From assembly GCA_038087875.1 (NCBI GenBank), contig CM075979.1:41850001-41914000 (forward strand): 64,000 bases of DNA. Direction: 5' to 3'. The notes below the pieces were generated by a model that saw only the letters and a program-made list of their open reading frames with translations, was not told where the DNA came from and did not search any database. Position numbers and translations under genes: made by a program. Below, one piece after another: positions 13,598 through 38,843 of the stretch; the first letter of the stretch is position 1; each line of letters starts with the position of its first letter. Source of the DNA: Malacoraja senta. Lineage: Eukaryota.

Positions 13598-14360
13598 CAT
13601 AGATACATAGAAAATAGGTGCAGGAGTAGGCCATTCGGCCCTTCGAGCCTGCACCGCCATTCAATATGATCATGGCTGATCATCCAACTCAGTATCCCGT
13701 ACCTGCCTTCTCTCCATACCCCCTGATCCCCTTAGCCACAAGGGCCACATCTAACTCTCTCTTAAATATAGCCAATGAACTGGCCTCAACTACCCTCTGT
13801 GGCAGAGAGTTCCAGAGATTCACCACTCTCTGTGTGAAAAAGTTTTTCTTTATCTCGGTCTTAAAGGATTTCCCCCTTATCCTTAAGCTGTGACCCCTTG
13901 TCCTGGACTTCCCCAACATCGGGAACAATCTTTCTGCATCTAGCCTGTCCAACCCCATAAGAATTTTGTACGTTTCTATAAGATCCCCTCTCAATCTCCT
14001 AAATTCTAGCGAGTATAAGCCAAGTCCATCCAGTCTTTTTTCATATGAAGGTCCTGACATCCCAGGAATCTGTCTGGTGAACCTTCTCTGCACTCCCTCT
14101 ATGGCTATAATGTCCTTCCTCAGATTTGGAGACCAAAACTGTACGCAATACTCCAGGTGTGGTCTCACCAAGACCCTGTACAACTGCAGTAGAACCTCCC
14201 TGCTCCTATACTCAAATCCTTTTGCTATGAAAGCTAACATACCATTCGCTTTCTTCACTACCTGCTGCACCTGCATGCCTACTTTCAATGACTGGTGTAC
14301 CATGACACCCAGGTCTCGCTGCATCTCCCCATTTCCTAATCGGCCACCATTTAGATAATA
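13598..14360 (-). mobile_element. CR1 LINE 3' fragment with intact 224-aa ORF2 C-terminus
   Basis: ORF 13689-14363 has RDLGV..KKANGML..LVRPHLEYCVQFWSP..RLRGDLIETYK. The 3' UTR closely matches the copy at 1-470. Confidence 0.93.
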
Positions 14361-14521
14361 CACTAGTTTACAAGCCCATCTGTTATTTATTGATTGTCAT
14401 AACAATATTTTGTTTAACAATATTCTGGACCAATTTCCGAGAAGTAGCTGGAATCGTCAATAAAGTTCAGATAGTCTAAAAAATATATAATGGATCGCTA
14501 GAAAAAGACCGGGATATTTAC

Positions 14522-19461: not shown

Positions 19462-19603
19462 GAGCAGCAAGGAGCTGCTGATTCATCTGTGGACCGAGAA
19501 GTCGGCGCACATCGTCGAGTCTTACGAAATATTCAAGGGAAAATTCATGTCATAGAGTTCAGCTCAATATTTACAACACATTCTTCTCAACTCAGAGCTC
19601 GAC

Positions 19604-19673
19604 ATGATGGAGCAAGAATACGACGGCGTCGAGACGCTGCACTATTCCGTGGGGATTCTCAGTATAAGCGCAG
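19604..19673 (+). CDS. SatP/YaaH-like repeat membrane protein with YrdC domain, exon 1 (total CDS 2598 nt, ~865 aa)
   Basis: GACATGATGG start. Encodes MMEQEYDGVETLHYSVGILSISA, then donor CAG|GTAATC. Phase 1 joins exon 2 in frame. Confidence 0.75.
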
Positions 19674-19755
19674 GTAATCGCCGAGCCTTCAAGCATTTCC
19701 TCCTAAATTTGTTTCATTGGTTATAAAGGATAACCCCTTGTTTATTGTGTGTTAG

Positions 19756-19860
19756 GTGCTCTGTTGCTGGCTGTGAATTACTATTCCACTGTTCCGCTGA
19801 TCCCCAGCACGGCTCTCGGTATTTTACTGCTTATCGTGGCGGCTCTCCTATGCTATACAG
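19756..19860 (+). CDS. SatP-repeat/YrdC gene, exon 2
   Basis: TTAG|GT...CAG|GTGAGT. Encodes the hydrophobic GALLLAVNYYSTVPLIPSTALGILLLIVAALLCYT. Phase 1-1. Confidence 0.85.
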
Positions 19861-22090
19861 GTGAGTTACAAACACTGAGGAGAATAAGACATCGTTGCTG
19901 TTGGCGGGCGTTCCAGTGTGCTGAATTACAATGCAAACTCTTGCTATTAACACTCGTTATTATCTGGTTAGCCTGTGTGAATAGAGATGAGAGCGCTATG
20001 ATAATATTTGAGATATTTTCCTTGATGCAAACGTAGTAATTATCGCCAACATCCACCCGGTCTCACACACGCTTGCGTTTTGCACCTGAAACGCCACCTT
20101 GTGGCGGGTTGTAGTTGCTTTGCCATCTATCCACTTCATTGCCATTGAAAGGATATTCAATTAAGTGAGTACTCGGGGAAGGCACCAAAAGATACAAAGT
20201 GCTGGAGTAACTCATGAGGCAACATCCTTAGAGAACATAGCAAGGTGACGTTTCGGGTCCGGATTCTTCTCCGGACTTCTCACTGAAAAGTTACGTGGCA
20301 CTTTTAATCAGTGGAACTGATTATTAATCGGGGATCGTGTTTTCATCCTAGACCTCTGGGTTTTCGTCTACCCGTGTGTGGTGGCTTGATTTATTCAAGA
20401 TCAGGATTAGAGCCCCCCTCAGGAATATCTACACCCGACTGGGTGAAATTTTTCTAAAACCAGTTTACAATTCTTGGTCATTTATATAAACCAGAAACTG
20501 CACAAAGCGCCCGAAAAACGTAAGTTTTTTTTAAATTGGAAGAAGATTTAGATCACTCCTTAAACCATCTAATGTACATATCAATATTTATCTAACACCC
20601 CTACATTTAAAATACATAATATTAAAAGCAATTATTTTTTTGGAAGATGGGACTCAAACCTGGAGATCTAACACTCTCTTCATCACTACAACTAGACATT
20701 TGGGGGGCATTGGTAACATCATAGTTATGTTACTTGGCCAATAATATAGAGCTTTGAATAATTATCTTAAAGCACGTTCAAATCCTATCCAAAAGCTGGA
20801 GAATTTAACTCCTGCTCACTGATTACATTGTCAACATCCAAAACATTTTTTGTCAATTCTGATTATGGACTGCCTCAAGGAAACTCCAAGAGGAAGAGGT
20901 CTACATTCCTGGTCAAGTTTTGACCTACAGGTTCAGAGCCTTAACAGCTATCTGAAGTTGCCAATGAAGTCACCTAGTTGTACCTAAAACAATATACCCT
21001 GTGAAGATACATATTTATCTGCAGGTTTAGGATGAGGCATCTGACCACTTTCAGAAGGGTACCGTGATAATAAAGCTCACATTTCACGAATAAATGTCAC
21101 ATAGAGGATATATTTAAGGAAATGAACTGGTTTGCCATCTGTATAAATTTCCACTGTAAGGCATAGATTAAGCATATTATTTATTGTGGTAATTTCAAAT
21201 TATTTATGAAGTTTGCCTTGTTTGGAAGTTATCTCCTTGGACATTTCAGTTCAGCATTATTTATGCAATCTTAAATGGAATACAGTGTCAATCAATGGAT
21301 GGATACAAGACTCCAAAAAAACCATAAAAGGTCACAAGTATCATGTCTGTGGAGGAAGTTCAGAAGGAATAAAACCATATTTGGTGATGAGGATTGAACT
21401 CGAATGAGTTCACAGACAGACGGGGAACCATACACGTTGTTATCATACTATGATTGAATTAGTTTTATATATTTTGGGTTCGCGTGACAAACTTCAAAGG
21501 GATAAGATAAAAAGTGAAGGAATAGAATAAAGGAGAATATAAATTGATTAAAAGCTGTATATATGTGTATCTGCATGCAAAGTGTAAAACAGGAAATAGG
21601 GAATAGTGACTGAGGATCATTAGTCAGACTGATGAAACAAAGGAAGTGTGATTAATGCTTGGAATAATTCACACAATTGTTTTAGACTTAAAGATGATGC
21701 GGCTGGGGGGAGGGGGAGAAATTGTAAGTGCAATTTCAAATGTTGCCAAAGATCCCAAATTGGGAGATCTAAAGGGCAAATGTGTCAGAAGGATATTAAT
21801 AACATTTCAGAATGCATGTGTAATTGGCAAATTAAGTTCAGTGTAGCTGAGTATGTAATGTATGTAGTGCATTTTGATTAGTAGAATTAAGGAATCAATA
21901 TATCTCGGATCACAAAATTTTGATGGATGGCAAGATAACAGCAACACCGGTGAATGAGGCCGTTATAAAAAAACTGTAAACTAAGGACTGGAGTTTATTT
22001 GGAATGTAAATATGTTGTTAAACTTGCACTGAACTTTGTTTGATCCAGACTTTAATAATTATTCGCTCTTCTGCCTTTCATATTGTAAAA

Positions 22091-22240
22091 TAGGGGCTAG
22101 TGGAGTCAAGGGATATGGGGAGAAGGCAGGCACGGGTTATTGATAGGGGACGATCAGCCATGATCACAATGAATGGCGGTGCTGGCTCGAAGGGCCGAAT
22201 GGCCTCCTCCTGCACCTATTTTCTATGTTTCTATGTTTCT
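22091..22240 (+). mobile_element. CR1 LINE 3' fragment
   Basis: AAGGGATATGGGGAGAAGGCAGG...GGCTCGAAGGGCCGAATGGCCT...CTATGTTTCTATGTTTCT tail. Confidence 0.85.
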
Positions 22241-23309
22241 AAAAAAGAGATGCATGCATTGGATAATCAATAAATGGCAACTGCCTGAAACGTCAAATAA
22301 AAACAGAAAATGCAAGGAAGATTCTGTATGGTCAGGGAGCATCTGCGGATAAAGAAATAGATTTAACATTTTCGATAATGTCAATTCATTAACTTGAAAT
22401 GTTAATTCTGTTGCTCTTTCCATCAATGCTGCTTCAGTTGGCTGTGAATTTCTAATATTTTCTATTTTTATTTCAGCTATTGATGTAAAAATTACGAGTA
22501 ATTTTGTTTTTAGAGCTAAGCAAAACTTGTGGGAGCTTTACCCCATTTGACTAGAAGCCTGCTAAAGGGCTTTTACAACAAGATGACAGTGTTGATATGG
22601 AGAAAATATCTTTGCTTAAGTTGAGTTTAAAACCAGAGTTCATAAGTATACAACTGATAAGTTTCATTGGTTATCCAGGAAACACTTTGTTTCCCAATGT
22701 TAAGAATATGAGACTCACTACAACATGGATGAGTGGAGGTAAATTTATCTCCATGTAGGAGTAGAGGTAAATGGCACAAATGCCTTCAGGAGGAAGCTGG
22801 AATGCACACAAGGGTGAAATGAAAAGAAACATATTATATGATGGTAGGCGTAAATGAAATAGATTCAGATTAGCTTATTGTCATAGGGGGCAATGAGATT
22901 TCTTGATCATATGAAGCTACTAGAGGAAACAGTACGCATGGTGATGACAGATACAACAATAAATACAATGACAAATGCAAAACAGATGGTGCAAAGATTA
23001 TACAACAATCTGAAGCAGTGCAATAAAATAAGATGGGGGAAAAAGCAAAATACTGCAGATTCCAAAAATCCAAAATTAGTCTTAATGTTCTGTTGGAAGA
23101 TCAACATGAAATGTGAATTTTATTTTCCTCACCCACCAATGCCGCTTGGAATCTTTAAGCGGGTAGATTGTCATTTGAAGCTGAAGAATGTATAGACTAT
23201 GGAGGAAGAATGGCTAATGGTGTAGTTCACACTCAGTGTAATTGGTGAATGTGTGTAAAACCTATGTCATCTCCTTTACTATTTATTTTCTGCTTGTTTT
23301 TTTTTTCAG

Positions 23310-24992
23310 GTATACGGAAGAGTTCAAATCGAGCTATCCCTTTTGTGAATCTATGCCTGACAGTGTCTGTCCTGTGGTGTGGATCTGGCCTGATCCACAT
23401 CTTAATGGGAGCAAATGTAGTTCAGAGTAATTCAGTCAGAAATGCTCTGGTCCCTGGTTTTGTAGCTTTAGTCTTGGTACTCTTCATCATTGGGGTTGTG
23501 GGGTTCATCCAAAAGGATGTAATCCCTGGTGTGATTGCCTTTGCTATTTCTCTTGCTACTGCTCATGAGATTGCTGCATTATATAATAAATCTTTTGGTC
23601 ATTCTGCAGTGGCTTCAAATTATTTGATCGTGTCCTTTATCGGCATTTACTTTGGATTGGGCCGTGCTTCTGTCTTCATAAGCAAAGGACAAATCACTTT
23701 CCCAGGGACTAGTCTGTCCAAGAATAAGTCCCATGTGACATTGAAATCGATAAGCTTCTTTAACAATGACACAATAGTTCTGGGATACATCACTAATATG
23801 CTATCTGCCAGTGTGTTCGGATGTCACCTATTGGGTGTAACTTCCAAACTGTCTGTTGGTCAGATTCCCTGGCTGTGGACAGCAGGCGTCTACCAAATTA
23901 TAGTTTGTATTTTGTCTTACAGGGCTTTTGACACGCTGAATGCTACATTCTTTGGTTTGACCTCCATATTAAAATTTGCAGAGGGATATGCATTGCTGTA
24001 CAGCATATGGCAAAGCAGCCAACCCTTCTTCCCAGTTCCAGTCCCGATTGTTCTTGCTGTCCTATTTTTCACGCTGGCTCTGTTCATGACCAGTAAAAGC
24101 CTTATTGATGGATTGTATCCATTGTTTTTTGTTGCCTATTGTATAGCAGTATCAGCTCGCTCCACAGGCTTTTTCCATGGTGGAGCACAAGGCGTGAGTG
24201 TGGCTATATTTATAGCATCTGCTTGCGTTACTTTAATTTCTCTTTTCAATAGCAAAGGGCCCCTGACATATCCCACTGGAGAAGGGGTTGTTAAAACTTT
24301 ATTCAGTAGGATGAATGCCTTATCTCTAAAGTCAGGTAAAGACTTCCATAACCCATATTTAGGATACTCCAGATACTCAGACGCTGAGATTCTAGCCCAT
24401 GCCTGCAATGTTGTGGCTTGTTTTGCCATCACTGTATCAATCAATCCTTTGGCACCTTTAGCCACTGTAGTTTTGCCTTGGATTGTTATTCCTGGGGGTG
24501 TCCTTCAGATCCTGTGTGGCTCAATCTCTTTTTCCCGGGGTAAAACCCTTGAAAGCTGTGCTTTCATTCTGTATGGTTTAATATGGATAATCTGGGGTTT
24601 GACCAGATATGGTGGTCTCTATGGTTCGACTAGGGGGTTTGGTATTGCTGTGGGAATTATTTGCTTCCTTCTCTTTAACAGTTTTGTGGTGATTGGCACT
24701 TGCTTTCTGAACACGGCATGGTTTGCCTTATCACTCAGCTTTCAGTTGATCTTAATAAGCTTCCTTTTGGATGCCATTAATGCAATTCCTTATGGATATG
24801 ATATTGGAGTCACCATCATTTTTGGTTTGATTAGTTTTTACTGCTTTCTGGCCACCCTCTTTAACCAAAGCTTTGAGAAACCCCAGTTACCTCTGGGACG
24901 GGCCTGGGCAAGCCTGTGTGGCTTTGGGCAGAACAAATCTGTGTGCCCTCATCTGCCTTCAAGAAAAACCACCTCAGTCAGAAAGATTGCAG
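23310..24992 (+). CDS. SatP-repeat/YrdC gene, exon 3 (1683 nt; most transmembrane helices)
   Basis: Lies within the 610-aa ORF. Acceptor (T)nCAG|GT and donor CAG|GTAAGG, phase 1-1. Contains GGVLQILCG..FSRGKTLESCAFILYGLIW and Y..LATLFNQSFEKPQLPLG, which match SatP/YaaH motifs. Confidence 0.92.
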
Positions 24993-26548
24993 GTAAGGCT
25001 CTGCAAAGATTGTTGGATTCCACATTGTTATTTCAGAGCTGTTTTCATTTCTTTAAGCGAAATAGCAAAATTAATAAGTAACATGTTACATTTAGTTTAC
25101 CCAGCCTCTTATTGACTTGAAGGGCTGAATGATCTAATGCTTCTAATTTGTATCTTCATATGTAACCTCTAAGATAGTGTATCATGCAAATCATAATTAT
25201 GAAATGTAATTACTTGGCTGTTCTTTTTATAACTTCTCTTCTATATACTTATATCCTATTATGTTTGTGATGGTCATGAAATGATAAGACAGCATTAAAA
25301 TCATTGGAGAGACCAAAGAGATTCAATATATTTAGTGTCAATTTCACCAATGTTTCTTGGAAACTTTATCCCACAAGTCTAAAAGACATTTGTGTAATAA
25401 CTTGGCTGCAGTCTTGGGGCATGAAATTTGTGTTTTCCAAAGATCCAAAACCAGGACCTTGGTAAACTATAAAATAAATTAGCAAGAAGCAGAGACTGCG
25501 AGCAAGGTGAGAAGGTATGTTAGAATGTGCAGTGGCTGAGAATGGTAAATTTTGGAAAAGAAAAGTAACAGTAAAATGTCCTAAAATGTAGACTGATCAA
25601 AATGAAGGGATAAAAGAGATGTAATCATGCACATATTTGTAATTGTACAGGAAAGGGTAGAATAGTTATAAAATGGAAACTGAAAAAATTTAAATTTAAA
25701 ATATCAGACATCCAGGATGATGTTGCATTTGGAAGGCAACAGTTAAACCATCAGTGAAGTAATTTATGTTGTTCTATACAAATTATTACCAAAAGGGTAT
25801 TAAATGCAAATGAAAACCTACTGAGAAGTTTAAGTCTGATTATAGTATGTCACAGATGCAAAAACAAGCTTGAAACTTAGTAATTTTTCCACTGAAAAAC
25901 AAATAGATGAAAAAGCATTATGAAGGCAATCAAGATATTTGAAGTTATATCTGGTTTTGAGGCAGAACAGTGTGAAGGATTGTGGGCAAATTCACAATCA
26001 GAGCTTATTAAATTTCAGATTGTCAGTAGAAATTTGGGATTTGAATTTACACAGGGAAATTGGAATTTTCTTTTCCACATAGGTTCAAAGTACATTTTTA
26101 TTCCATATTATGGCTATTGTAAATTTTTGTTTTATATTGTGACAAAGGCAATCATCTATTTACTTTCAAAGAAAGCCTGTGAAAAACGATGATGAGTAGA
26201 TAGATTTGGAGTAATTAAATTTGGCACAGTCATTCATAGTTCCTCCCATATTGTGATTCCTGATTCTTCCCATCAATATTCTGGGTGATGGCTAATAGTT
26301 TGTCAGAATTTAGTTAATGACTTTTTTTCTAGCTTCTCAATGTTCCATTTGTGCCACCTAGCAGAGTAAAAAAATGGTTACCAGGCTTAACTTTGTCAGT
26401 TCCGTCAGAGCCTGTGGTCAATAGTCCTCAATGTCTATTGTTGCTTTTAAATCATTTTTTTTATCATGACACTGAACACATTTAGGAAGAAAAACAATAT
26501 GTTCTTTGGGATTTTCCTGTTTATTAAAATGTTATTTCTTTTCTGCAG

Positions 26549-26648
26549 AAATTATGAAAAATGGAGGAATCTGTGGTATTCCAACAGACACTGTGTATGT
26601 GTTGGTGGCAGCCTGCAATTGTCCTGATGCTGTTGAGAAGGCTTACAA
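26549..26648 (+). CDS. SatP-repeat/YrdC gene, exon 4 (start of YrdC/Sua5 domain)
   Basis: TTCTGCAG|AA...AA|GTAGGA. Encodes EIMKNGGICGIPTDTVYVLVAACNCPDAVEKAY, with the PT(D/E)TVY YrdC motif. Confidence 0.9.
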
Positions 26649-26819
26649 GTAGGAACTGTTTTACATTGAGTGTTATTCACTTGGGCCTGTACCAAAGACC
26701 TTTAGTGCATTTGGAGTGGAGAACATCACTAATGCACCTATCTATTCACGCTTATATCTGAACATAGAAAATAATAGCTGTATATTTGGAATTATTTCTT
26801 ATTGTATTTACTAGATCCT

Positions 26820-26950
26820 GAAATGTATTTATTTATGCCTACTATATTCTGTTGTGCTGAAGCAAAGCAAGAATTTCATTGTCCTATCTGGGACACATGA
26901 CAATAAACTCTCTTGAATCTCTTGAATCTTTTGAATCTTTTGAATCTTGA
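26820..26950 (+). mobile_element. LINE-like 3' terminal fragment with (TCTTGAA)-type tail
   Basis: ACACATGACAATAAACTC followed by TCTTGAATC tandem units. Related ends occur at ~11840, ~27260 and ~57900. Confidence 0.45.
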
Positions 26951-27682
26951 AATTTGCAAGCATAAGAGCAGAACTGGTGCAAAAAAATGTATCCACTTCA
27001 AGAAAACCTGAAACACTCAACAAGTCAGTCAGACTAAAGAAGGATCTTCAATCTGAAATGTTAACTTTGATTCTCTTGCCATAGATGTTGCCTGATCTGC
27101 CAAGTGTTTGCAGCATTTTTTTCCTCACAATTCCAGCCCCCTTTTTTTTATTTTAATGTATCATTATTGGTTATCAATCTGTGCACTGTGGATGACTTGA
27201 TTGTATTCGCTCTTCTTTGACTGAATAGTAAAACAAAAGCTTTTCACTGTACTTCGGTACACATGACGATGATAAACGAAACTAAACCTATTATGAAGCC
27301 ATTGCAATGAATATATTTCATTGCTTGTTAGGTTGTTATTTCAACATATCTCAAGACATAAATATTAAATATCAAAAAATGTATGGATCATATTTAACAC
27401 TGAACATTTGTTGTGGGATAAATGTGTAAAGTGATAACATCCCTTGTATGTAAAGATAATGTACAAACATCCTTGGAAGTACAATGTTCCATTTATTTAA
27501 CTACTTTCTTGAAGAACTATCCTAATACAAAGGATGAGCTAAAGATGACTGATTCAGTTCCTTAATTTCTTGCATGTCAAGTAATGCCAATACCAAGCAG
27601 CAGTATTTTGATGCTTTATAATTTGTAAGCTAAGAATAGATGAAAAATATAACTAAGAAATGTATATTTTTTGTTTGAACAG

Positions 27683-27831
27683 CACAAAGAAGCAGGCCAA
27701 GGACAGGCCCATGTCTCTGTGGATCTCCAGCTTAGCACAACTGGAACCAGTTAAACATCTGTTAAACCCTCTATTGTGGGACTTTATGCAGGCAGTTTGG
27801 CCATCGTCTATCAGCCTTGTCATCCCCAGGG
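27683..27831 (+). CDS. SatP-repeat/YrdC gene, exon 5
   Basis: AACAG|C...AGGG|GTAATA. Encodes TKKQAKDRPMSLWISSLAQLEPVKHLLNPLLWDFMQAVWPSSISLVIPR. Phase 2-1. Confidence 0.9.
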
Positions 27832-28217
27832 GTAATACGCCTTTGTTCATCTCCATATTCTTCCTCTAAACCACCCACCAAGCAAATATGTTTTTCTCAT
27901 TCATGCAGTGTTTCATTTTCCAGCTCAAACGACAGATTGGAAATCTTTTATTGGGTGTCTCTATTCTTTGCTGTATCAAAATGCAGTTGGAAAAATCCAC
28001 TTTCATTCTGTCGTGAAGTATCTTGTGAAGTATTTCATCAATTTAGAACACTATCAGTTTATCAAAGTATAACCATGGACATTCCATGCATATTTGCCAA
28101 TCTCAAATTGCATAATTAAAATTAACTATCTGTTCCACTAGCACACAATTCATGTGTCAATCTGATTTAAATCAATGTGGGAGAATGATTATTAACAAAT
28201 GTTGTTTTCATTGGAAG

Positions 28218-28330
28218 GTGAATGGCTGGAACCATTTGGACTGAAACATGCAGATAAGTACATCGGGACACCTCAAAGCATCGCCATTAGGATTCCAGAC
28301 TGTGCTGTTACAACACATCTCATTGATCAG
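28218..28330 (+). CDS. SatP-repeat/YrdC gene, exon 6
   Basis: GAAG|GT...CAG|GTGAGA. Encodes GEWLEPFGLKHADKYIGTPQSIAIRIPDCAVTTHLIDQ, with the I.IR.P YrdC motif. Confidence 0.9.
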
Positions 28331-28872
28331 GTGAGATATTCCGAAGGAGCTTTTTTATATATTTTGCATATATTGCTGAATTTCCTTGACACTTTTCATT
28401 GCCTTTATTTACTTTCCCGATTCAGTGGGTTTTGACAGAATATCTGAAATAAAATCTATGTTTAGAAATAGCATCGGTAGAGAGAGAAATGGTTTCATCA
28501 GAACTGCTCCACAGAATGCCTTCTAATCTACTGAGAATTTCCAGCATTTTCAGTTTTTATTTTGGTTTTCCAACATCTGCAGTTCTTTTGATTTTCACAT
28601 AGAATATCCACTTGTTTCACTGGGAAATACTTGTAACTATGAACCAGTAGTTAATTCCAGGTGTGTGATTGCTTTATTTCATGGGGTCAGTTGTAAGTAT
28701 TTCAGAATTACCAAAGAAATACTGTTCAGCTATATTTTGCTAATGAACCTATCACCATAATATGTCTTATTCTAAAGTCTGCAGCATGCATAAAAGGAAA
28801 TACATTGTTCGATGGAATACAAAACAAATGAAACAAATCAGCATGTGATTATTAGATTGTAGGAAAGAGAAC

Positions 28873-29103
28873 AGTGTGTGTGCGTGTGTGAGTTTGTGCA
28901 TGCATGTGTGCATGAGTGTGTGTGCGCGAGTGTATTCATGCGTGTATGAGTGCGTGCATGAGTGCATTCATGTGTGTGCGTGCATGCATGTGTGAGTGTG
29001 CATGCATGCGTCCATGAGTGTGTGTGCATGTGCGTGTGTGCATTCATGAGTGTGTATGAGTGCATTTGTATGTGTATGCATGAGGGCATTCATTCGTGTG
29101 TGT
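28873..29103. repeat. TG/CATG-rich low-complexity microsatellite
   Basis: Interleaved TGTG, GCATG and TGAGTG units. Confidence 0.9.
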
Positions 29104-29530
29104 TTGGTGCAAGAGAGAAAGCAAAAGCAGCTCTCACAATTCTTGTGGAAGATTTGCGTTTTTAAGCAGAATGCAGGTTTGGTTAAGTCTTATTTTTGTA
29201 GAAATTATATTAAGTGTGGAAACTGTCAGTACTAAAAATTTCACTAAAGGTGGTTTTGAAAAAAGTTTCATTTTGTTTTTACTGTGGTGCCTGGAAGAGC
29301 TTTAATTTTATCATGGCCTGACACGGTTCTTCCCAACTTCAAGGCCTTACAGGTCTAGTCACTGGATAATGATTATGAGCAAAAACCATTGCAAAATTCC
29401 CTTTGCTAGCCAGATTGCTAGGGTTCATTATGGAGCTTACTTCCTCTTCAGCAGAAACTCAATCAGAACAGGGAATGAGTGTAGATCCACTTCTGTCTAC
29501 ATGGTAGCTAATCTTTCTCTGCATGTGCAG

Positions 29531-29620
29531 GTAGGCCCTATAGCGGTGACATCAGCAAATCCAACAGGAGAAGCAGACACCACACACCACAATCAAGTCT
29601 ATGCCAAACTTGGAGAAAAG
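29531..29620 (+). CDS. SatP-repeat/YrdC gene, exon 7
   Basis: GCAG|GTA...AAG|GTAAAG. Encodes VGPIAVTSANPTGEADTTHHNQVYAKLGEK, with the TSAN.(S/T)G YrdC motif. Confidence 0.92.
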
Positions 29621-29707
29621 GTAAAGTTAACTCTTTAAGTTTCAAACGTAAGTTCTGACATGTATCGTCATAGTTAATTACACATGGAAATTTTGTTCCC
29701 GGTACAG

Positions 29708-29830
29708 GTTAATGGAGTATTGTGTGATGGGCCGTCACCTGAGAATATTGCCTCTACTGTTGTAGACTGTACCAAGATAGAGACGGGTACACTTGGTTTC
29801 TTTAGAGTTGGCATTGTGCCCAAATCAGAG
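29708..29830 (+). CDS. SatP-repeat/YrdC gene, exon 8
   Basis: ACAG|GTT...GAG|GTAAGA. Encodes VNGVLCDGPSPENIASTVVDCTKIETGTLGFFRVGIVPKSE, with the STVVD and R.G YrdC motifs. Confidence 0.92.
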
Positions 29831-31164
29831 GTAAGAGTAACATCATATTGATGCATTGATGTAACATATCTGTCCTGAAATCAGTTTTATAGTTTGACCT
29901 TGCACGAGGGCAGATTTAAAAATGAAAATCTGGAGATTTGGGAGAAAAAATAAAGATGAAGAAATGTATTTAAATTAATGGTTCTCAGAAAGACTTCAAA
30001 AGACTCCAATCCTATCATCCATTTCATTCTTGAATGATTCTCACCAGACAAGTATCCACAGCTCATTATGAGAAGCAAGCTGAAATATATATTCTACTTT
30101 ATTCTACTCTACCTGACGGAATATCATACTTTGAAGTAACTTTTCAGATTTACTTGTTTTATTCGGGTTACTGCCCTGTGTTTCACAAAGGTCACTTTCC
30201 AGATGTCTCCATTTGCGGTTGAAGAGGGTAGATTTTCTCCAGCGGTTCCAAATCCAGTGACATTAGGATCAGTTTTGTCCTTCTTTCTATTTTGGCAATT
30301 GTTAGAACAGCCTCCGTTTACTTTTGTGTTCTAAACCTGCCTATCTTTTGCTTCTGTGTGCTGAAGCAAGACAGGGTTGATAAAATATGGTTTTACCATA
30401 AAGTCTCGGTAGAATCTGAACCTCCTCTGAGTTTCATCCTGTTTAAGATCTTAATATTTTATTCGTCACTTTCCTTTAGTTAGCCATAATTTAACAATGA
30501 GTCTGATAATAATCTCCTTAATTTTCATCCTTACTGACTTCAATACCATTCATAAGTATTTGTGATGCCCAAGTGTTTTTTAAAAAACTTTAATCCTGGC
30601 AGTATAATCTCGTACACACCATGTCACTTTACCCAACCTATTGGATTGTTACTGAAAAAAACTCGTTTCCTGAGTATACTTCAGGAAAGGAAATTTCTCA
30701 TCCTTACTGGGTATAGCTTAAATGATACTTCAGTCCCACCAATCTGGTTGACTCCTTGAGGACCAATTAACTTGAGGAGCAATTGGGGATGGTTAGTAAA
30801 TCCAGACTTAGTCAGTGTATCTCCATCCTGTGAATGAATAAAAATATAGGAATAATGGCTCATTCTGTCCACTTTGTCCAACTCATTGTGCAACTTAATG
30901 GCTCTCATTATTTCTTTGATTGAAAAACAACTTTTTTAATGGAAGATCTTTATCCAAATATAGAGATACCTCCATTAAAGAGTGACATAAACTCAGCAGT
31001 CACTTATTCCCACAACACAACTAAATAGTAATGGCTTTACTATCACAGCTTCGATGTTCTTGAAAGTTTCAATAATTTCATTGTTCACCTTCTTCTGAAA
31101 CTAATCTCAGTGGTTGGGAAACATTCCAATAGCTGCTGAGAGTCCAGCCAATTCTGGACTGGCA

Positions 31165-31425
31165 CTGGCAGCATGGTGGCACAGAAGCTGCCTTACAGCA
31201 CCAGAGACCCGAATTCAATCTTGACTATGGGTGCTCTCTGTACAGAGTTTGTACAATCTCCCTGTGACTGCGAAGGTTTCCAGTTTCCTCCCACACTCCA
31301 AAGATGTGCAGGTTTGTAGGTAATTGGCTTCTGTAACCATGTAAATAGTCTCCAGTTTACAGGATAGAACTACAACACGGGCTGATAGCTGTTTCTGCAT
31401 TGTACCTCTAAAGTCTAAAGTAAAG
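31165..31425 (+). mobile_element. V-SINE (HE1-like), degraded
   Basis: GGCAGCATGGTGGCACAG..CTGCCTTACAGCACCAGAGACCC...TTCCTCCCACACTCCAAAGATGTGCAGGTTTGTAGGTAATTGG. Confidence 0.75.
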
Positions 31426-31902
31426 CTCATTACTAAAGAAGGCATCACAATCAAAGCCAATCCTATCAATGTCCACACTGAATAACAAAGGACAAGAAAA
31501 ACTTGGTTATGTTATTTTTCATTTCTCACCATTGAATTAAGGATGCTCGGAGCCTCAAATGCACATAGCTCCCCGTTATAGAGTAGAAGGCTATCCTCAG
31601 TTGCTTGCAATAAATGCATGGTTAACACCATTGTGGTTGTGTGCAGTACTCTGAAACTGAACTTTGCCTCCTTTGAGACTATTTTGGAAGTGGAGCACAA
31701 TCATATATCCGCATTCAGTGCCAGCAACTGAATGAAATTTGTGAATCAAACCCACAAGCACCTGCTGTGTATTGTTTCATATTTACATTATAAATCATCA
31801 ATGGAATAATATTTGAAGTATTTATTCTAATGGATGAATTCTAATGGAACAATTCTAAAATTGTTTTCTTTTGCTAATGAACTATTTATATTTTGATTGA
31901 AG

Positions 31903-32067
31903 ATTCTGCAGATATTCGAAGAAGTGCAGAAGAAATCTCTGAAAGGTCATTCCAATGATGGATTCATTGATGGTCATTCAGAACCTAACACAGTTCAGCA
32001 GCCACAGACTCCATATTCCTTTGACAACATGGGCTTTGTAAATGAGAAGGAAGATGATAAGTTGTAG
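31903..32067 (+). CDS. SatP-repeat/YrdC gene, exon 9 (last)
   Basis: Acceptor GAAG|ATT, with an alternative in-frame CAG| at 31912. Encodes ILQIFEEVQKKSLKGHSNDGFIDGHSEPNTVQQPQTPYSFDNMGFVNEKEDDKL*. Phase 0. Confidence 0.75.
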   Translation: MLQIFEEVQKKSLKGHSNDGFIDGHSEPNTVQQPQTPYSFDNMGFVNEKEDDKL

Positions 32068-32763
32068 TATAAATGTATTACTGAAGAAATATGTAAACAT
32101 TTGAGCATCCTTTTGCAAACAAAACTATAAACACAAAAATGACATCATAAAGGATGTTGACGAGCCTGATGATTGGTTCCTGCACCTTCTGAGTTTATGA
32201 CAAATTTCCATGATCTGCATGATTTTGCGATGATTTGCTGTAGTATTTCATGAGCCATGGTACAATAACTGTGGTTAATATTACTGTAAGAACACTATTA
32301 ACTGACCTTAAAGGTATCAATTACGGATCAACTACTATGTAAGGCAGTTTTGTGCCCTTCACATACACAAAAATGATCAAGCTTATAACTGAGCATGAAT
32401 GAGTCAAATAGTAAGTGAACTTTTAAAATTGGCCACGAGTAGAAGAAAACCAATGGAATCAGAGAAGAGTAAGAGTAAAAAAGGAAGTAATTTAACCGAT
32501 CATGTCCTGCACCAATACGTACACTTGACCTACCTCATTCTCAAGAAGCATAACTAATTCTTCTTTTCTTGATGGATTAGAAATGTAGTGTTCTGGACAT
32601 ATTGGAAATTCTTTCAGCCTTTCTGCTCTTAGCACTATCCCAGTTTTCCTTGGGATGATTTAAATTTTCCAATATAACAACCAAATTATTTTTCCACCTT
32701 GGTAATCTCTCTGTATACAGTATTTGCTCTTCCACGTCACACTCACTTGTTGGAGGAGGAATT

Positions 32764-32963
32764 AGAAACATAGAAGATCGGCCCTTCGAGCCAGCACCAC
32801 CATCAATATTATCATGGCTGATCATCCAAAATCAGTACCCCATTCCTGCTTTTTCCCCATATACCTTGATTCCTTTAGCCTTAAGAGCTTAATCTAAACT
32901 ATCTCTTGAAAACATCCAGTGAATTGCCCTCCACTGCCATCTGTGGCAGGGAATTCCACAGAT
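32764..32963 (-). mobile_element. CR1 LINE 3' fragment (duplicated at ~43177-43376)
   Basis: AGAAACATAGAA tail plus TCGGCCCTTCGAGCCAGCACC...GAATTCCACAGAT. Confidence 0.75.
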
Positions 32964-33288
32964 TATTCACACAGACTCAAACAGATGAAGTGTAATTTGG
33001 CTACAGTAATGCTAGTTGGGATATAACTATGTTTTCTTCTCTGAACCTCTGTGGTTTTGATGTGCATAAACATTGCAGAGCTTTGAAAAGGAGCACATTT
33101 GTCCCATTGAATGTGGATTCATCCCCAAAAGCTTTAAGAAATGTCCATGTTCATGTCATTGATGCTGTGGAGCACCAAATCTGAATGGAAAATTCATATT
33201 TATTCTGAATTCAATGAAAGATGTATATAAGGAAATTGAAATTTGACAGAGGGGTGTAATTGCACTTTATATTGTATGCATATTTTTA

Positions 33289-33294
33289 AATAAA
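33289..33294 (+). promoter_or_regulatory. Candidate polyadenylation signal of the SatP-repeat/YrdC gene
   Basis: AATAAA ~1.2 kb after the stop, in U-rich context with downstream GT-rich sequence. Confidence 0.4.
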
Positions 33295-35624
33295 AATATC
33301 TTGGTTTCTATATGTGAATTATTGTATATTTCTCACTATGAAGTAACTGGATTATTATACAATGACTGATGAACAGTTTTCACTGCCCAGATACAATGTT
33401 TGTTGATGACGATGAATCTTCATGTTTTTATAACTCCCAAGCTTTACAGTAGCAATTTGGTGACTACCATCTTTGAATAAACTGAGACAGTTGGTTTGGG
33501 CCTCTTGAGTTGTTCTTCCATGGGGAAGGTGGATTAATATGTCTGAAAAAGGCAGATGCAGTAACCTGCTTCATCCATCTCTGTGTAGATGTCTGACCGA
33601 AAATACCACAAACAACAACAAAAATGTTCATAGCAATGGAAACTGTCAGGACAAAAGCAAGACCATCCCAATGATGAGTTACTCCCTTGATGGTAGCCTC
33701 TTTGCTAAGGCATGGAGTGTAAAACGGGTGCACTTTAACACACCCAAGAATAGTGCCTTTGCTATAAAGTCCAACAGAGTGAAGCAGGATGCCACAGCTG
33801 AGGTGAAAGGCCATCTTTCTTCCCACCATTGTAACTCTTCCTCCAAACTGAATTTGATAATTCTCACTTGGACTGTAGAATTATATTAAAAATAATGGAT
33901 GAGAGTGCCTTGAAGTACAATGATGACATATCAGTTATAGAATACTAGCATCATGGGCTCGGGCAGCATTTATTGTACAACCATCATTGCGGTTTGGAAG
34001 ATAGGGTGAGATAAGCTGCTACTTTGAAGTGGAGGCTGGAAGGTTAAAGTATTCCTCTCTTAATCATACATTAGTTGGGAAAGTTCATAAATGTTGTTGA
34101 AAATAATTGTTTCCTGGTAGTTGTGTGTGTGGTGGAAATGTTGGTTGGCACTTATCAGCTTTTCTGAATTTGTCCAGGTTTTGTTACACACTGACAGGGT
34201 CTGCTTCATTATCAGAACGATTGCAAGATCATGTGAATATTCTTCAACAAACATGCCCACTTGTGGTCATTGTATGAAGGGCAGATTTTTTATCAGATCG
34301 CTGAAACCCATTGAGTAAAACAAACTGCCCTGAGGCATTCTGCAGCAATGTTCTGACTGGGACAATTGATCGTCAAAAAATTAAACCTCTGTTGATATAC
34401 AAGGAGGAATGTCGCTTCGGAGGTGAAAGGAAGTACCAACATTTTAAATATCAGGATTAGCTGCTTAACATTAATTCTGTTCTTTTTATCAGCATATGAG
34501 GAAATGATTTCACAGATTTGGTTCAGCGTCAAATTGTACCATAGTTACAATTTACTCACCATTGCCACAATTGTCACTGGGGAACATGAGGTGAAGATAC
34601 AGAGAAGGAATATAAAGTAATAGCAGAGACCATGACAAAACTATTTGGCTTGGTGTAAGTTATAAAAAAAAGTTTGCTTGGTCTTTGCTAGATATTGAAA
34701 GTATTGTGACGATGTGGCAGTAAGAAGAGAGGCCAGGGGAGAAATCTACAAGGAGGTCCCAATCCTGTTGGTATTTTCAAGCAGTGGATGTGAGGATGCT
34801 GACAGCATTTGTTCTGACAAAATTAGTGGAAGGAAAAAAAGGCCAATGCAGAGAAGCAGAGCCACAAAAGCTCTGGCACTGGATCATTAAGACCAGAGAG
34901 TTAAAAGTGGGGATCAAAAATTGTGTCAGACAAATGGGTTGTAATTCATGGAGCAGTTGCATCCATACTGGGGAAGAAGGGAGCTGTTCTGTTGAAACAG
35001 GCTTCACCTGAATAGAGCAGGGACCAGTGTCCCAATGGAATGAAAAAAATCAGGCTACAGATAAAAGCTAAAATGAAATAGTGGAGAGGAGTGGGTGTCT
35101 TTTTGGGGGGGGGGGGGGGAGACAGAATAGACAATGAACAATGCGATGGTGTAAAATTACAAAACAGACCATGTAAATCAAGATCTCTCTGGATTTTTAA
35201 GCCTAAAGGTATTCCTCCAATCAGAAAGATAGCATGAACGTCAAAAGGCACTTTATCTGATCACGCATTCCAATTGCAACCAGCTATGTAAATAAATGCC
35301 ACACATAGAAACAAATGTGCACCCTCTAAGAGCCATTCTAGAATTATTCTAGTGGCCAAGGTGGGGAATTAAATATTCCAGGGTATTTAAGCAAAGCAGA
35401 AGACATTGGATGGAGTTTATATAGATCCCAAAGCATTAGAAGTAATCTTGGATATTGTATTAATCAGAAAATTGGAGATGTATGTAATAAGGATAACAAT
35501 TATTGCAGGCTATAAGCTACATATAGAATTAGCAAATTAAATTAGCAGTAAAATAATGGAGGATGAATTTGTGGACAATTAAATGCCAAATGGTACATAA
35601 TTTTGATAAATGTGTGCAGAAGAG

Positions 35625-35880
35625 ATTTAGATATATACAACACGGAAACAGGCCATTCAGCCCACCAAGTCCGTGCCATCCATTGACCTCCCTTTTACAC
35701 TAATCCTACAGTAAACCCATTTTTTATTCATCTACATACTGTATAGAGGCCAATTAATCTACGAACCCATGTGTCTTTGGGATGTGGGAGGAAGCTGGAG
35801 GACCTGGGAGAAACAAATGCAGTCACAGGGAGAAAGTACAAACGACACACAGATAGCATTTGAGGTCAGGATCAAACCCA
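35625..35880 (-). mobile_element. V-SINE (duplicated at ~46038-46293)
   Basis: ACACGGAAACAGGCCATTCAGCCCACC...GTCTTTGGGATGTGGGAGGAAGCTGGAG...GAGGTCAGGATCAAACCC. Confidence 0.8.
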
Positions 35881-38188
35881 GAACCCAGAGTTAATTATTT
35901 TTTTCACCAACTAGTAATCAAGACATGCAACTGCTTCCGCTGGTTTTATTTATCTGCTAAGAGAGAACATATTGAGAGATGACTGTAATAATGGGAGTAG
36001 CATTAATAAGTGGTAATTCATGCAGTAAACTGGTGGGAAAGAAAGGAAATTATAGCTGCACTCAGTTTTGCCCTGTATCTAGTCATTTTCTTTTCAAGAA
36101 GGGTCACGCAATAACTTCTAGGAGTGGGAGATACCTGCAGTTTTGGAATGTGCGGTATTGGAGCACCTCAGGAAGAGGCACAGAACATGGCTGAACCAAG
36201 AATTCCCCCTGTATAGGCCCTATTATAGAAATTTTCTCTGTCCTATATTTAAATTATAAAACAAACAAGCATTTAGATATAAATGCCTAGATTTAGGCTA
36301 CATACTGTAAATTACATTTAAGGATCAAAGTGGTTAATTCAGGAATGACCATTCTATAGTTATAATTTCTGATAAGGAAGGGTTAATGAATCTGGAGAAA
36401 CATTTTCAGGAGGGAAATGTAAGACTTTAGATGATGAAAATGGAATACAGCATTAGAAAAGGTTTCGACAAGCTGCCACATGGGAGGGATATACAAATAT
36501 AAGGGCTATAAAGAGGATGTAATTTTCAATTTGAACGTAGTAGCCAATTATGTTTCTCAAATACACTGTAAGTGCTATCTACCGTGATTCAATACTGGGG
36601 ATACCTGTTTGCTGTTCGTATCAATGAATTGAACAGAAACTCCAGAAAAATGGTACCAAAATTAGCAAGTTAATAGAGATTAGGATGATGCCATAAAAGG
36701 CTAATACAAACTGGAAAGAGATATCGATAAGTCGAGTCAAGAAATACATGTAATTTATTGATGAGAAGCATCACAAGGAGCATTTTGGTTATTATAGTTA
36801 GTAAAACTGATCACAGTGTAGTGAGAATCAAAGAAAGGCACAAAATGCTGGAGTAACTAGTCATCTAGTCAACTCTAGTCACTGGAGTAAGCAGCATATC
36901 TGGAGAACATGGATAGGTGTCATTTCGGGTCAGAACCCTTCTTCAGACAAATTGTTGAGAACCTATGTGGTTTTACTAGGCATTTCATATTTCCTGAAGT
37001 TATCCAAGATGACAAGTTAATAGCTGCCCTGTCAATTGGTCTTAAAGTCCAAAATCCAGAATCATTTCCATTGCACAGGGTTTACTTCAATGTACCACTC
37101 TCTATGGGATTCATCACATCTTTGTATGCAGAATGTAGTGACACTCAACCAGACTGACATTTGGACTAAAAACTAGAAGGCAATTTATTTAACATAGAAG
37201 TTAAATGAACAATATTCAGTACAAATAACGCCTATACAGTAATTTACAAACCTGCTACCCTTATCAATGTATCATAAAATTGACTTACTTTACCTTGCAA
37301 ATTAAAAGTCAAAGCTGTTTTGCACTTATTTTATCATTTGCTGGCCTGACAGATTGAAAAAGTCAAATTCTGACAGGCCATGATAAAGTCCCATGAATAC
37401 ATTCCAGCTAAAGAGCTGTCCATCAAAAACTTGCAATGAGTCAGTGAGTCATCCCCTTGTCAAAGGATCCACATCTCCAAGCATGACAACTGTAAATTCA
37501 AAATCATAATTCACTGCACTTCAATAATCTAGGATATTCTGACTTGAGATTATATATTAATGGTTCAGGTGAAAACACCCTTGTGTAGTCAATCTTCAAA
37601 ACACTGTCTAACAGTTTAATAACCATTATTCCATTCTGTTTTATAACTATTTTCTTTTGTACACCCAGAATCATGTTTAAGTGCGCATTAATGCCTGTAG
37701 ACTTCCAGCTTGTAATATATATTCTTGTACTTAATAGAGTACATTTTCATTTAAACCAGGTCAACTTTAATTGAACATATATAGCATAAATTTTAATTGA
37801 ACATACATAGCATATAATATCTTCACAGAATTAAAATCTATCAATAGAGATAAGCTTGTAAGCTTTCTCAATCTGTTCTTGTTATATATAATGTATTTGT
37901 GTTGTGAGAAATTCCATCAATTCCTTCACCAAAATCTCAGGAATAAGATCCAAGATTGCCGAGGTATTAGGAAACTAATCTTAACATTGACTATATAGTA
38001 ATGTAAAAAGCATGGTTCAAGTTCCAAGGATTGCTGTGGGTAAAGACTGCAAAAACTGTGAGAAAAGCTTTGGTCATACCAGTTGGGAGCTGAGCAACAT
38101 CACCTCTGGAATACACTTGTCAATAGATCAAGATTCCAGCATCTGCATTTGTTGTGTCTACTGGAAAAAAAATTGACACGTTTGAGCT

Positions 38189-38369
38189 TTAGCTACAGAA
38201 ATCTTCCTTTTGCCGTCGGGCAGCCCTCTCATCTGCCCGCAGTATGTTTTCATCAATGAATGAAAACAGCTCACTGGGTGTAACAGGTTGAATATAACGT
38301 TCCCTGTCAGTGCCATATTTGTCAATCAGGACAACATCAAAATGCCTATCGGATAAATAATAGACTTGT
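38189..38369 (-). CDS. SRPX2: SRPX2 last coding exon, distal duplicate copy
   Basis: Same translation as 48604-48784. It lies downstream of the first-encountered stop exon, so its use is uncertain. Confidence 0.6.
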
Positions 38370-38721
38370 CTGCAAAAGGAACAGAAAAGAAGCATGTTAA
38401 TAGGCTGAAAACATCTTTCAGAATTTATTAATGCAGAATTTACTTATGGTGCTTCTTGCAAAAAGATAGCAGATAATTTGAAAATTAACACATTTCTAAT
38501 AGAGAGTAGATTTTCCTCATTTGTATGTATTATACTTTACAAAATTAGGGAAATTCCTTACATTTAACAGTTGCTATGGTAAAGGTAGGTACACCTGCAT
38601 ATTAAGCCCAGACATCCTCATTTGTTTAGAAGTGGTGATTGAAACTTGGAATCTTCAGTCTGTGGACAAGATCTAAGCTGGCCATCATTCATAGTCCAAG
38701 TAATGGCAGTGTCTGTCATAC

Positions 38722-38843
38722 CTGAGTTCATCAGCCATTTCTGTAGAAAGCTGCTGCTCCTTTATGCGTCCTACTAGTTTTGGTGGATTTCCAATCAATT
38801 CGATTACTGTTATTTGCCACTGTTCAAATCCACAGGAAGCCTC
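38722..38843 (-). CDS. SRPX2: SRPX2 penultimate exon, distal duplicate copy
   Basis: Encodes EASCGFEQWQITVIELIGNPPKLVGRIKEQQLSTEMADELR. Duplicate of 49137-49258. Confidence 0.6.

Follow-up and report, generated by a model that had tools for sequence, protein, structure and literature searches.

A skate orthologue of zebrafish si:ch211-153b23.4 joins three SatP/Ato-like membrane repeats to a YrdC domain with an altered active site

Introduction

To our knowledge, channels of the AceTr family, typified by SatP of Escherichia coli and Ato1/Ady2 of yeast, were long regarded as microbial proteins only. The view that they are absent from Metazoa has recently been corrected by a survey in which AceTr/Ato members were found to be widespread in Bilateria (Ghasemi et al., bioRxiv May 2025, 10.1101/2025.05.26.656167; iScience 2026 29:116467, PMC13316224). 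According to that survey, the vertebrate "ATOs" are proteins of about 900 residues composed of three Gpr1/Fun34/YaaH domains and a C-terminal Sua5/YciO/YrdC domain, and they form two clades present "in every major lineage, except mammals". The triple domains modelled by AlphaFold reach a TM-score of 0.82 to SatP in TM-align, and two protomers were hypothesised to form a six-domain ring; the passages on these proteins report neither a functional test nor an active-site analysis (PMC13316224). The subject of the present report is a member of this family in the skate Malacoraja senta, encoded on the plus strand at positions 19604-32067 of a 64,000-nucleotide stretch of genomic DNA, hereafter the window (GenBank assembly GCA_038087875.1, contig CM075979.1, positions 41,850,001 to 41,914,000 of the forward strand).

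The family, its triple-repeat architecture and its fusion to YrdC are thus already known, having been in print in 2025-26. A preliminary description of the skate gene, made from the DNA letters, had implied that the fusion was new and had taken the channels to be confined to bacteria, archaea, fungi and protists; both points are superseded by the survey, which had also put forward the ring (PMC13316224; 10.1101/2025.05.26.656167). What is added here is a remodelling of the YrdC active site from K-x-R to K-x-Q and its distribution among lineages, fusions in amphioxus, molluscs and microbial eukaryotes, a tree of the paralogues, and an orthologue in the platypus.

Gene structure and transcript support

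The gene consists of nine GT-AG exons in compatible phases, which together give a coding sequence of 2598 nt and a protein of 865 residues with one terminal stop. Its best database match is an 864-residue protein of the little skate, Leucoraja erinacea (P0001), recorded as "uncharacterized protein si:ch211-153b23.4", which aligns without gaps at 95.5% identity. Five Logan transcript contigs, independent of one another and 3.0-3.46 kb long, were drawn from five SRA runs; all encode this little-skate protein exactly and without interruption, and the little-skate genomic gene spans 11.5 kb. Two little-skate cDNAs align to the window in nine blocks of 91-100% identity, the ends of which coincide with the predicted exon borders to within a few bases of BLAST junction overrun. 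One of these blocks, at 26544-26648, places the junction of exons 3 and 4 within the little-skate transcript, and it is this junction that joins the membrane region to the YrdC domain. In a more distant species, a transcript contig of 4.2 kb carries a fusion open reading frame (ORF) of 890 residues. The gene model and the fusion of channel repeats to YrdC are real and belong to one gene and one transcript, and the preliminary description, which had read nine exons in consistent phase, an uninterrupted protein of about 865 residues and the union of SatP/Ato-like repeats with YrdC, was correct in these respects. Orthologues of 860-890 residues extend from sharks to birds and the platypus at 55-95% identity, and the skate gene is the orthologue of zebrafish si:ch211-153b23.4. 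As had been anticipated, the names assigned automatically in databases are only "uncharacterized" or "Threonylcarbamoyl-AMP synthase".

The 5' untranslated region (UTR) covers at least 19485-19603, the little-skate cDNA contig L004 being aligned from 19485 to the donor of exon 1 at 90.7% identity. Exon 1 (19604-19673, donor GTAATC, cDNA block end 19675) holds the start codon (ATGATG), a predicted cytosolic N-terminal stub and the beginning of the first transmembrane (TM) helix of repeat 1, and exon 2 (19756-19860, cDNA block 19754-19862) continues from TM1 to TM2 of the same repeat. The exon 2 donor CAG/GTGAGT at 19860 is the sole donor that reproduces the little-skate protein sequence at this point (...LLCYTG/IRKSS). 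Two further in-frame donors, at 19974 and 19917, would add 38 or 19 residues (models of 903 and 884 residues) and are ruled out by the little-skate protein and cDNAs. The remainder of the membrane region and the linker are contained in exon 3 (23310-24992), and exons 4 to 8 encode the YrdC domain. The 3' UTR extends over at least 32068-32781, as the cDNA L004 is unbroken over 31901-32781.

The membrane region

The protein was modelled with AlphaFold2 on an alignment of 37 orthologues, and repeat 2 was also folded separately. In the full-length model the mean predicted local distance difference test (pLDDT) score is 71, with values of 80-94 over most of the membrane region, and 18 TM helices are arranged as three sets of six (residues 11-181, 213-373 and 417-578), in agreement with the number estimated in the preliminary description. 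The part of repeat 1 encoded by exon 3 (23310-23737, model residues 59-201, helices at 67-181) completes a divergent six-TM AceTr-like unit recognised by profile homology. It is followed by repeat 2, a six-TM unit with the SatP fold (23738-24343, residues 202-403), and by repeat 3 (24344-24937, residues 404-601), where the match to SatP covers model residues 412-588.

Repeat 3 provides the clearest link to the characterised channels. It superimposes on SatP 5ys3_B with a Z-score of 20.1 and a 2.3 Å root-mean-square deviation over 172 of 182 residues (VIA-align), matches the E. coli satP product by BLASTP (26% identity over 156 residues, E 4e-7), and is aligned with SatP over its full length by hhalign (94.5%, E 1.5e-8), so that the resemblance of this block to SatP, originally noted by eye, withstands formal comparison. 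Family profiles are less generous to the skate sequence itself: exon 3 reaches 29.9 bits (E 5e-7) against NCBIfam AceTr_1, under the cut-off of 50, and 15.8 bits against PF01184, under the cut-off of 25, and a PF01184 scan of the little-skate protein gave no match at E <= 0.1. The PF01184 cut-off is passed in some orthologues, including that of a lungfish (P0017, 29.1 bits) and those of many teleosts. Of the two Pfam assignments proposed for checking at the outset, that of the YrdC domain holds in full, and that of the channel repeats falls under the cut-off in the skate, although hhalign supports the homology. A word-indexed homology search gave no match for repeat 3 taken by itself; E. coli SatP, used in the same type of search, brought up close enterobacterial relatives and nothing else, which implies that the SatP profile is shallow.

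The origin of repeats 1 and 2 is more deeply concealed. Folded alone, repeat 2 (pLDDT 78) matches SatP 5ys3_B with a Z-score of 18.1 over 174 of 182 residues, and its second-best structural match is the UreI urea channel (Z 13.5-14.3). With a vertebrate-only alignment, hhalign comparisons of repeats 1 and 2 with the other blocks and with SatP were not significant; Pfam scans of the 37 orthologues assigned no consistent family, PF01184 being found for repeat 1 in one of the 37 (E 0.26) and for repeat 2 in none, and skate repeat 1 itself has no direct Pfam or SatP match. The profile comparison became significant once the alignment was widened to take in the paralogue lineage, amphioxus, molluscs and protist fusions (see below). 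Repeats 1 and 2 then align at 95.6% (E 1e-8), repeats 1 and 3 at 95.2% (E 2.5e-8) and repeats 2 and 3 at 98.3% (E 1.6e-14), in each case over the full length, and repeat 2 aligns with SatP at 93%. The blocks are colinear in every added sequence, so that no register slip lies behind the signal, and the weak PF01184 matches in the paralogue lineage and in protists land on repeat 1. A protein-language-model look-up, usable only as a lead because the method is uncalibrated on parts of proteins, put each of the three blocks beside PF01184 clusters, with scores of 0.86-0.87. Given the fold matches, the mutual profile homology and the PF01184 matches on repeat 1, all three repeats, and not the third alone, descend from an AceTr domain.

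Repeat 3 is both the most SatP-like and the most constrained of the three. The ratio of nonsynonymous to synonymous change (dN/dS) relative to the little skate is 0.08 in repeat 3, 0.33 in repeat 1 and 0.55 in repeat 2, values drawn from small counts (83 differences in all), and mean column identity is 0.79 in repeat 3 as against 0.71 and 0.72 in repeats 1 and 2. Hallmark residues were read from profile alignments rather than structural ones. By this reading a counterpart of the SYGxFW motif survives in repeat 3 only, as LYGLIW, with Y479, G480 and W483 kept and the Tyr and Trp invariant.

The loops on the N-terminal side of the membrane, predicted to be cytosolic, contain 19 Lys or Arg residues, as against three on the opposite side, and in AceTr proteins the N and C termini are both intracellular (PMC8379382). 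From this charge bias and the known topology of the family, a cytosolic location is predicted for the N terminus, the two linkers between repeats and the YrdC domain. Exon 3 ends in a basic linker (24938-24992, pLDDT < 50) leading to the YrdC domain, likewise of predicted cytosolic location, with a conserved CPHLPxRK motif; seven Lys or Arg residues lie between the end of TM18 and the start of YrdC.

The YrdC domain and its active site

Residue numbers in this section follow the little-skate protein, which equals the numbering of the window model minus one. Functional residues were taken from the Pa-Sua5 structure paper (PMC6004061) and mapped by hidden Markov model (HMM) alignment to Pa-Sua5, St-Sua5 and Tm-TsaC2. 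Residues 606-812 match PF01300 with 114.8 bits (cut-off 25.1), the best PDB profile is that of TsaC2 (9d3h, E 6e-21), and residues 602-817 superimpose on residues 8-211 of Sua5 2eqa with a Z-score of 12.2 (VIA-align). The preliminary description had named two outcomes as fatal to its proposal: assignment of the membrane part to an unrelated fold, against which stand the SatP matches of repeats 3 and 2, and a lack of transcripts joining exons 3 and 4, which the cDNAs dispose of for the little skate. The structural match to Sua5 ends at residue 211 of the latter, and neither the SUA5 linker lid, with its PGM and HY motifs, nor the C-terminal Rossmann domain is present. Instead, exon 9 (31903-32067, pLDDT < 50) encodes an acidic tail and the stop codon, such that the YrdC domain is followed by about 55 poorly conserved residues of low pLDDT (mean column identity of the tail 0.41, dN/dS 0.79). 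The YrdC domain itself is under the strongest constraint in the whole protein, with a mean column identity of 0.88 and a dN/dS of 0.075.

The motifs of the YrdC fold that had been quoted from the translation (PTDTVY, WP, IAIRIP, TSANPTG, STVVD and FRVG) are all in place, and most of the residues that contact substrates in Pa-Sua5 are retained. Exon 4 (26549-26648), which alone matches PF01300 with E 4e-6, opens the domain (GGICGIPTDTVYVL) and carries T633, the equivalent of Thr35. Exon 6 (28218-28330) encodes IAIRIP with R726, the counterpart of the threonine-binding Arg121; exon 7 (29531-29620) encodes TSANPTG, which lies within the PF01300 match and holds an intact S-x-N half of the catalytic tetrad (S747 and N749, for Ser143 and Asn145); and exon 8 (29708-29830) encodes STVVD and FFRVG, in which S785 aligns with Ser181 and R802 is probably the equivalent of Arg195, as judged from its position in the motif, which lies outside the printed alignment. 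All of these residues, as well as K654 (Lys56), are invariant in 37 of 37 vertebrate orthologues.

The first half of the tetrad, encoded by exon 5 (27683-27831), has been altered. The skate tetrad reads K654-K-Q656/S747-A-N749 instead of K-x-R/S-x-N, the Gln codon being at 27693-27695, so that the early description of a complete YrdC domain is right for the fold and its motifs and wrong for the tetrad. Position 656, which corresponds to Arg58 of Pa-Sua5, is Gln in 30, His in six and Lys in one of the 37 vertebrate orthologues and Leu in three molluscs, and is never Arg; the Pro that follows the Arg of K-x-R is replaced by Ala in the clade of the skate protein. Two further substitutions are found in the same exon. 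Four residues past 656, Arg occupies the position of Asn62 (R660, 36 of 37 vertebrate orthologues), and Trp occupies that of His67 (W665, 37 of 37). In Pa-Sua5, Asn62 contacts pyrophosphate together with Arg58, and His67 belongs to the L-threonine/bicarbonate contacts (PMC6004061). The K-x-R/S-x-N tetrad serves the field as its filter for true TsaC/Sua5 orthologues (PMC6004061; PMC10321239), and with K-x-Q in place of K-x-R the skate domain falls outside it. Owing to this non-canonical tetrad, the synthesis of threonylcarbamoyl-AMP is not to be assumed, and the residue pattern suggests that the automatic UniProt name "Threonylcarbamoyl-AMP synthase" should not be applied to the si:ch211-153b23.4 clade.

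A domain that has truly decayed is provided by a frog (Pyxicephalus adspersus, P0284, 814 residues), in which the YrdC domain lies on a very long branch and lacks any of the catalytic residues, the K, S, N, T and R all being replaced. By comparison with this example, the pattern in the skate is unlike that of a true pseudo-domain.

Several cysteines are also invariant among the vertebrates. These comprise the Cys of a CPH motif in the linker (residues 603-605, C603 and H605 invariant) and C627, C641, C730, C775 and C790 of the YrdC domain. C730 occurs in the vertebrate ".4" clade alone, and C775 and C790 are shared with lineage B (defined below) and are not found in the protist fusions. This pattern would allow a metal site or redox control.

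Distribution and evolution of the fusion

The wider family was collected by an exhaustive HMM search with a profile of the YrdC domain. Long multi-TM fusions were found in the vertebrate paralogue "si:ch211-153b23.3", in amphioxus, in the molluscs Argopecten and Saccostrea, in a second mollusc group (Ylistrum, Candidula and Argonauta), and in an MMETSP transcript of a marine microbial eukaryote, with further records from JGI, ENA, Logan and NCBI. In a tree of YrdC domains, all fused domains form one clade separate from stand-alone YrdC, TsaC and Sua5 (support 100). The full-length tree, rooted on the protist group and with all nodes supported at 99-100, contains two animal lineages: lineage B, composed of the vertebrate ".3" proteins, amphioxus and molluscs, and lineage A, in which the second mollusc group is sister to the vertebrate ".4" proteins, with the skate inside the ".4" clade (100). 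A second tandem paralogue, of the kind seen in the zebrafish.3/.4/.5 genes, was looked for in the 64-kb window and was not found.

The state of the active site follows this division. Lineage B and the protist fusions have the canonical K-x-R-P...K-P (R at 656, P at 657 and K at 660), whereas lineage A has K-x-(Q/H/K/L)-A...R-P. As lineage B and the microbial eukaryotes keep K-x-R/S-x-N, the enzyme domain of the ancestral fusion had a complete tetrad, and the change in lineage A is a shared derived feature of that lineage. Judged by the same trees, the fusion of channel to enzyme is older than the animals. The position of the molluscs as sister to the vertebrate ".4" clade leads us to prefer an old duplication followed by vertical descent over horizontal transfer, as old paralogy appears to fit this position better.

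The platypus (Ornithorhynchus anatinus LOC100084527, P0060, 878 residues) has a full-length orthologue with all of the lineage A active-site residues. It falls inside the vertebrate ".4" clade, next to goose in the YrdC tree or to goose and alligator in the full-length tree, and is the only mammal among the best 120 orthologues. The statement that mammals lack the family therefore needs the qualifier "therian", the absence from therians being one seen among the best 120 matches.

Proposed function and alternative explanations

Overall, these features are best explained if the skate gene, as the orthologue of si:ch211-153b23.4, encodes a triple SatP-fold channel whose cytosolic, TsaC-type YrdC domain is coupled to the permeant, an interpretation in which we have somewhat more confidence than doubt. 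The mechanism as a whole, in which a small-anion or monocarboxylate channel would carry a ligand-binding YrdC domain that acts on or responds to the permeant, is more tentative, belief and disbelief being close to balanced. SatP crystallises as hexamers with one pore per protomer (PMC8379382); a chain of three repeats is then half a ring, for which a dimer is the simplest completion, and two chains probably pair such that their 2 x 3 repeats restore the hexameric ring of six pores known from SatP. Repeat 3 would be the best-preserved pore and the best candidate for the conduction of a small anion, and repeats 1 and 2, having lost the hydrophobic residues of the constriction, may conduct something else or be structural. 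The YrdC domain, tethered directly after the last helix of repeat 3, would still bind ATP and an amino-acid or carboxylate (bicarbonate-like) ligand, and would act on, or respond to, the solute that passes through the pore. The preliminary description had likewise proposed a channel-enzyme (chanzyme), in which YrdC would gate, sense or use the transported anion.

The ancestral fusion would have been a working adenylate-forming enzyme. In lineage A the tetrad Arg appears to have given way to Q, H, K or L and, four residues on at the position of Asn62, an invariant Arg to have been gained, and the chemistry would be either kept by way of this relocated Arg, which may rescue catalysis, or changed. 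In the more specific form of the latter option, the re-wired site (K-x-Q/L, displaced Arg, His replaced by Trp) would use ATP for another kind of carboxyl or carbamoyl activation, its target being an anion received from its own half-hexamer channel. We regard this form as quite unlikely; if true, it would make the protein a true channel-enzyme with a product other than threonylcarbamoyl-AMP, the ancestral chemistry being kept by the paralogue lineage and the protist fusions.

A number of points weigh against the coupled channel-enzyme as preferred here. The literature is without a transport or enzyme assay for any metazoan member of the family, and the transcript evidence for splicing comes from the sister species, the little skate. 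In the membrane region, by the profile alignment, none of the three repeats has the NPAPLGL signature, which is required for uptake in characterised AceTr proteins. At the corresponding positions, repeat 3 has D-A-E-I/V-L-A/G, repeat 2 has D-x-x-V-x-G and repeat 1 has L-H-x-S-x-G, with the Gly alone kept. Similarly, of the F-L-Y constriction formed in SatP by F17, Y72 and L131 (PMC8379382), the Tyr of repeat 3 alone is conserved. The Tyr position is occupied by V76 (Val/Ile) in repeat 1 and T275 (Thr) in repeat 2, the skate has Leu at the L131 position and most vertebrates have Tyr or Phe there, and the equivalent of F17 is ambiguous, being N424 or F429 depending on the alignment used. In the YrdC domain, the model is of low confidence over residues 750-806, the Arg of K-x-R is reported as indispensable to the binding of ATP and to activity in TsaC and Sua5 (PMC6004061), and the domain may, on its residue pattern, be inactive.

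The last of these points is the substance of the rival that survives best, in which the YrdC domain of lineage A is a regulatory pseudoenzyme, a non-catalytic cytosolic sensor of a nucleotide, an amino acid or bicarbonate that would gate AceTr-type pores. The loss of an essential Arg from a position that is variable (Q, H, K and L) is as expected of a non-catalytic site, the activity of AceTr proteins is known to be regulated by their cytosolic termini and loops (PMC8379382), and bacteria offer a precedent in YciO, an inactive paralogue of TsaC (PMC10321239). Such a loss of function sits less easily with the invariance, in vertebrates and molluscs, of all other residues that contact ATP, threonine and bicarbonate and with the low dN/dS of the domain, with the appearance of a new invariant Arg at a pyrophosphate-contacting position, or with the quite different look of the decayed frog domain. 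We consider a pseudoenzyme unlikely on balance, while still a serious contender.

The two rivals that come next are both improbable. Were the protein a membrane-anchored but otherwise canonical threonylcarbamoyl-AMP synthase for tRNA N6-threonylcarbamoyladenosine (t6A), its membrane part serving only to localise the enzyme, the strong PF01300 match, the Sua5 and TsaC2 structures as nearest solved neighbours and the retention of the threonine-binding residues would all be accounted for. Against this, vertebrates have a separate YRDC gene, His67 has become Trp, the SUA5 domain is missing, and the fused domains form their own clade apart from the stand-alone enzymes. Sequences with an incomplete KRSN tetrad are moreover discarded by the field as non-orthologues (PMC10321239), and a distribution with no mammal in the published survey (PMC13316224), and with the platypus as the only one in the best 120, would be odd for an essential t6A enzyme. 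It is about as doubtful that the membrane part forms no pore and acts as a scaffold, or that it transports an unrelated solute such as urea or an amide, in the manner of UreI/AmiS. The absence of NPAPLGL, the replacement of most constriction residues and the rank of UreI as next-best structural match (Z 14) are compatible with such a role, and skates are ureosmotic animals. The protein is, however, also conserved in animals that are not ureosmotic (birds, teleosts and amphibians), SatP is a better match than UreI by four Z units, and the sequence-level signal leads to AceTr and not to UreI. Finally, a mis-joined model, with the membrane ORF and the YrdC exons belonging to two adjacent genes, or with a decayed retro-insertion as the source of the YrdC exons, would explain why gene finders on short genomic contigs call exon 3 alone (547-635 residues), but can be dismissed, being refuted for the sister species by five transcript contigs with the whole 864-residue ORF and by cDNAs that cross every junction, and contradicted more widely by the 890-residue fusion in the 4.2-kb transcript of another species and by an architecture kept in dozens of vertebrates, amphioxus, molluscs and microbial eukaryotes.

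With the coupled channel-enzyme retained as the preferred interpretation, the presence in animals of a conserved AceTr protein joined to an ATP-dependent carboxy-adenylating fold suggests that the entry of a small anion (acetate, lactate or one resembling bicarbonate) may be coupled to its activation or sensing. The residue-level results single out repeat 3 as the likely live pore and ".3" as the paralogue that keeps the tetrad. Other papers that name the zebrafish gene limit its mention to differential-expression tables. One of these, on larvae infected with Shigella sonnei, has it in the top 50 of differentially expressed host genes, directly after irg1l and epidermal keratins and with no direction stated for the single gene, and this listing next to irg1l hints at an epithelial or innate-immune metabolic role (PMC6980646).

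Neighbouring sequence features

A head-to-tail tandem duplication of 10.4 kb (32238-42653 and 42651-53068, 99.95% identical) starts inside the 3' UTR, which from 32238 onward falls within it, and includes the identical ORFs 33464-33829 and 43877-44242; it could be a very recent event or an artefact of assembly. ORFs at 13689-14363 (minus strand) and 56009-56599 (plus strand) resemble the C-terminal part of the reverse transcriptase of a long interspersed nuclear element, with the motif ...LEYCVQFWSP..., and are probably transposon remnants on either side of the gene. A minisatellite occupies approximately 1272-1725, where ORF translations on both strands have a period of 12 residues (36 bp), for example FSTFKTKGKAAC repeated.

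Comparison with known systems

Among the described systems, the vertebrate ATOs of Ghasemi et al., such as Oryzias melastigma A0A3B3D9A3 and zebrafish si:ch211-153b23.4 (about 865-900 residues), belong to the same family as the skate protein, which differs from them in nothing of kind. The present analysis departs from the survey in that the molluscs are sister to the vertebrate clade rather than nested in it, and in that the platypus has the gene. The urea and amide channels UreI and AmiS (PDB 3UX4, 6NSJ) are likewise six-TM hexameric channels with one pore per protomer, and repeat 2 of the skate protein resembles them with Z-scores of 13.5-14.3; unlike the skate protein they have no fused enzyme, they score below SatP, and no similarity was seen at the level of sequence.

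A closer relationship is found with SatP (YaaH) of E. coli and Citrobacter koseri (PDB 5ZUG, 5YS3) and yeast Ato1/Ady2 (AceTr, TC 2.A.96), with which the skate repeats share the six-TM hourglass fold (Z 18-20). As in SatP, repeat 3 has a counterpart of SYGxFW, the constriction Tyr and a C-terminal ...LP(I/L)G ending, and the termini would be cytosolic. SatP chains contain one repeat and assemble as hexamers, whereas the skate chain contains three repeats and an enzyme domain, lacks NPAPLGL, does not conserve the Phe and Leu of F-L-Y, and scores under the Pfam and NCBIfam cut-offs. At its other end, the protein shares the YrdC α/β fold with TsaC, Sua5 and YRDC (PDB 9D3H, 2EQA/3AJE, 6F87, 1HRU). 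It keeps the threonine and bicarbonate contacts made by Thr35, Arg121, Ser181 and, probably, Arg195, as well as Lys56 and S-x-N, and differs in the replacement of Arg58 by Gln, Asn62 by Arg and His67 by Trp, in the want of a SUA5 domain or linker lid, and in being tethered to a membrane channel.

A precedent for the arrangement as such is found in the YrdC-like domains of HypF and TobZ, which form carbamoyl adenylates and resemble the skate domain structurally (Z about 10) at 14-17% identity. In these proteins a YrdC fold with carbamate or carboxylate and ATP chemistry is fused to a partner that uses its product. That partner is a Kae1-like transferase in HypF and TobZ, and in the skate protein it is a membrane channel.

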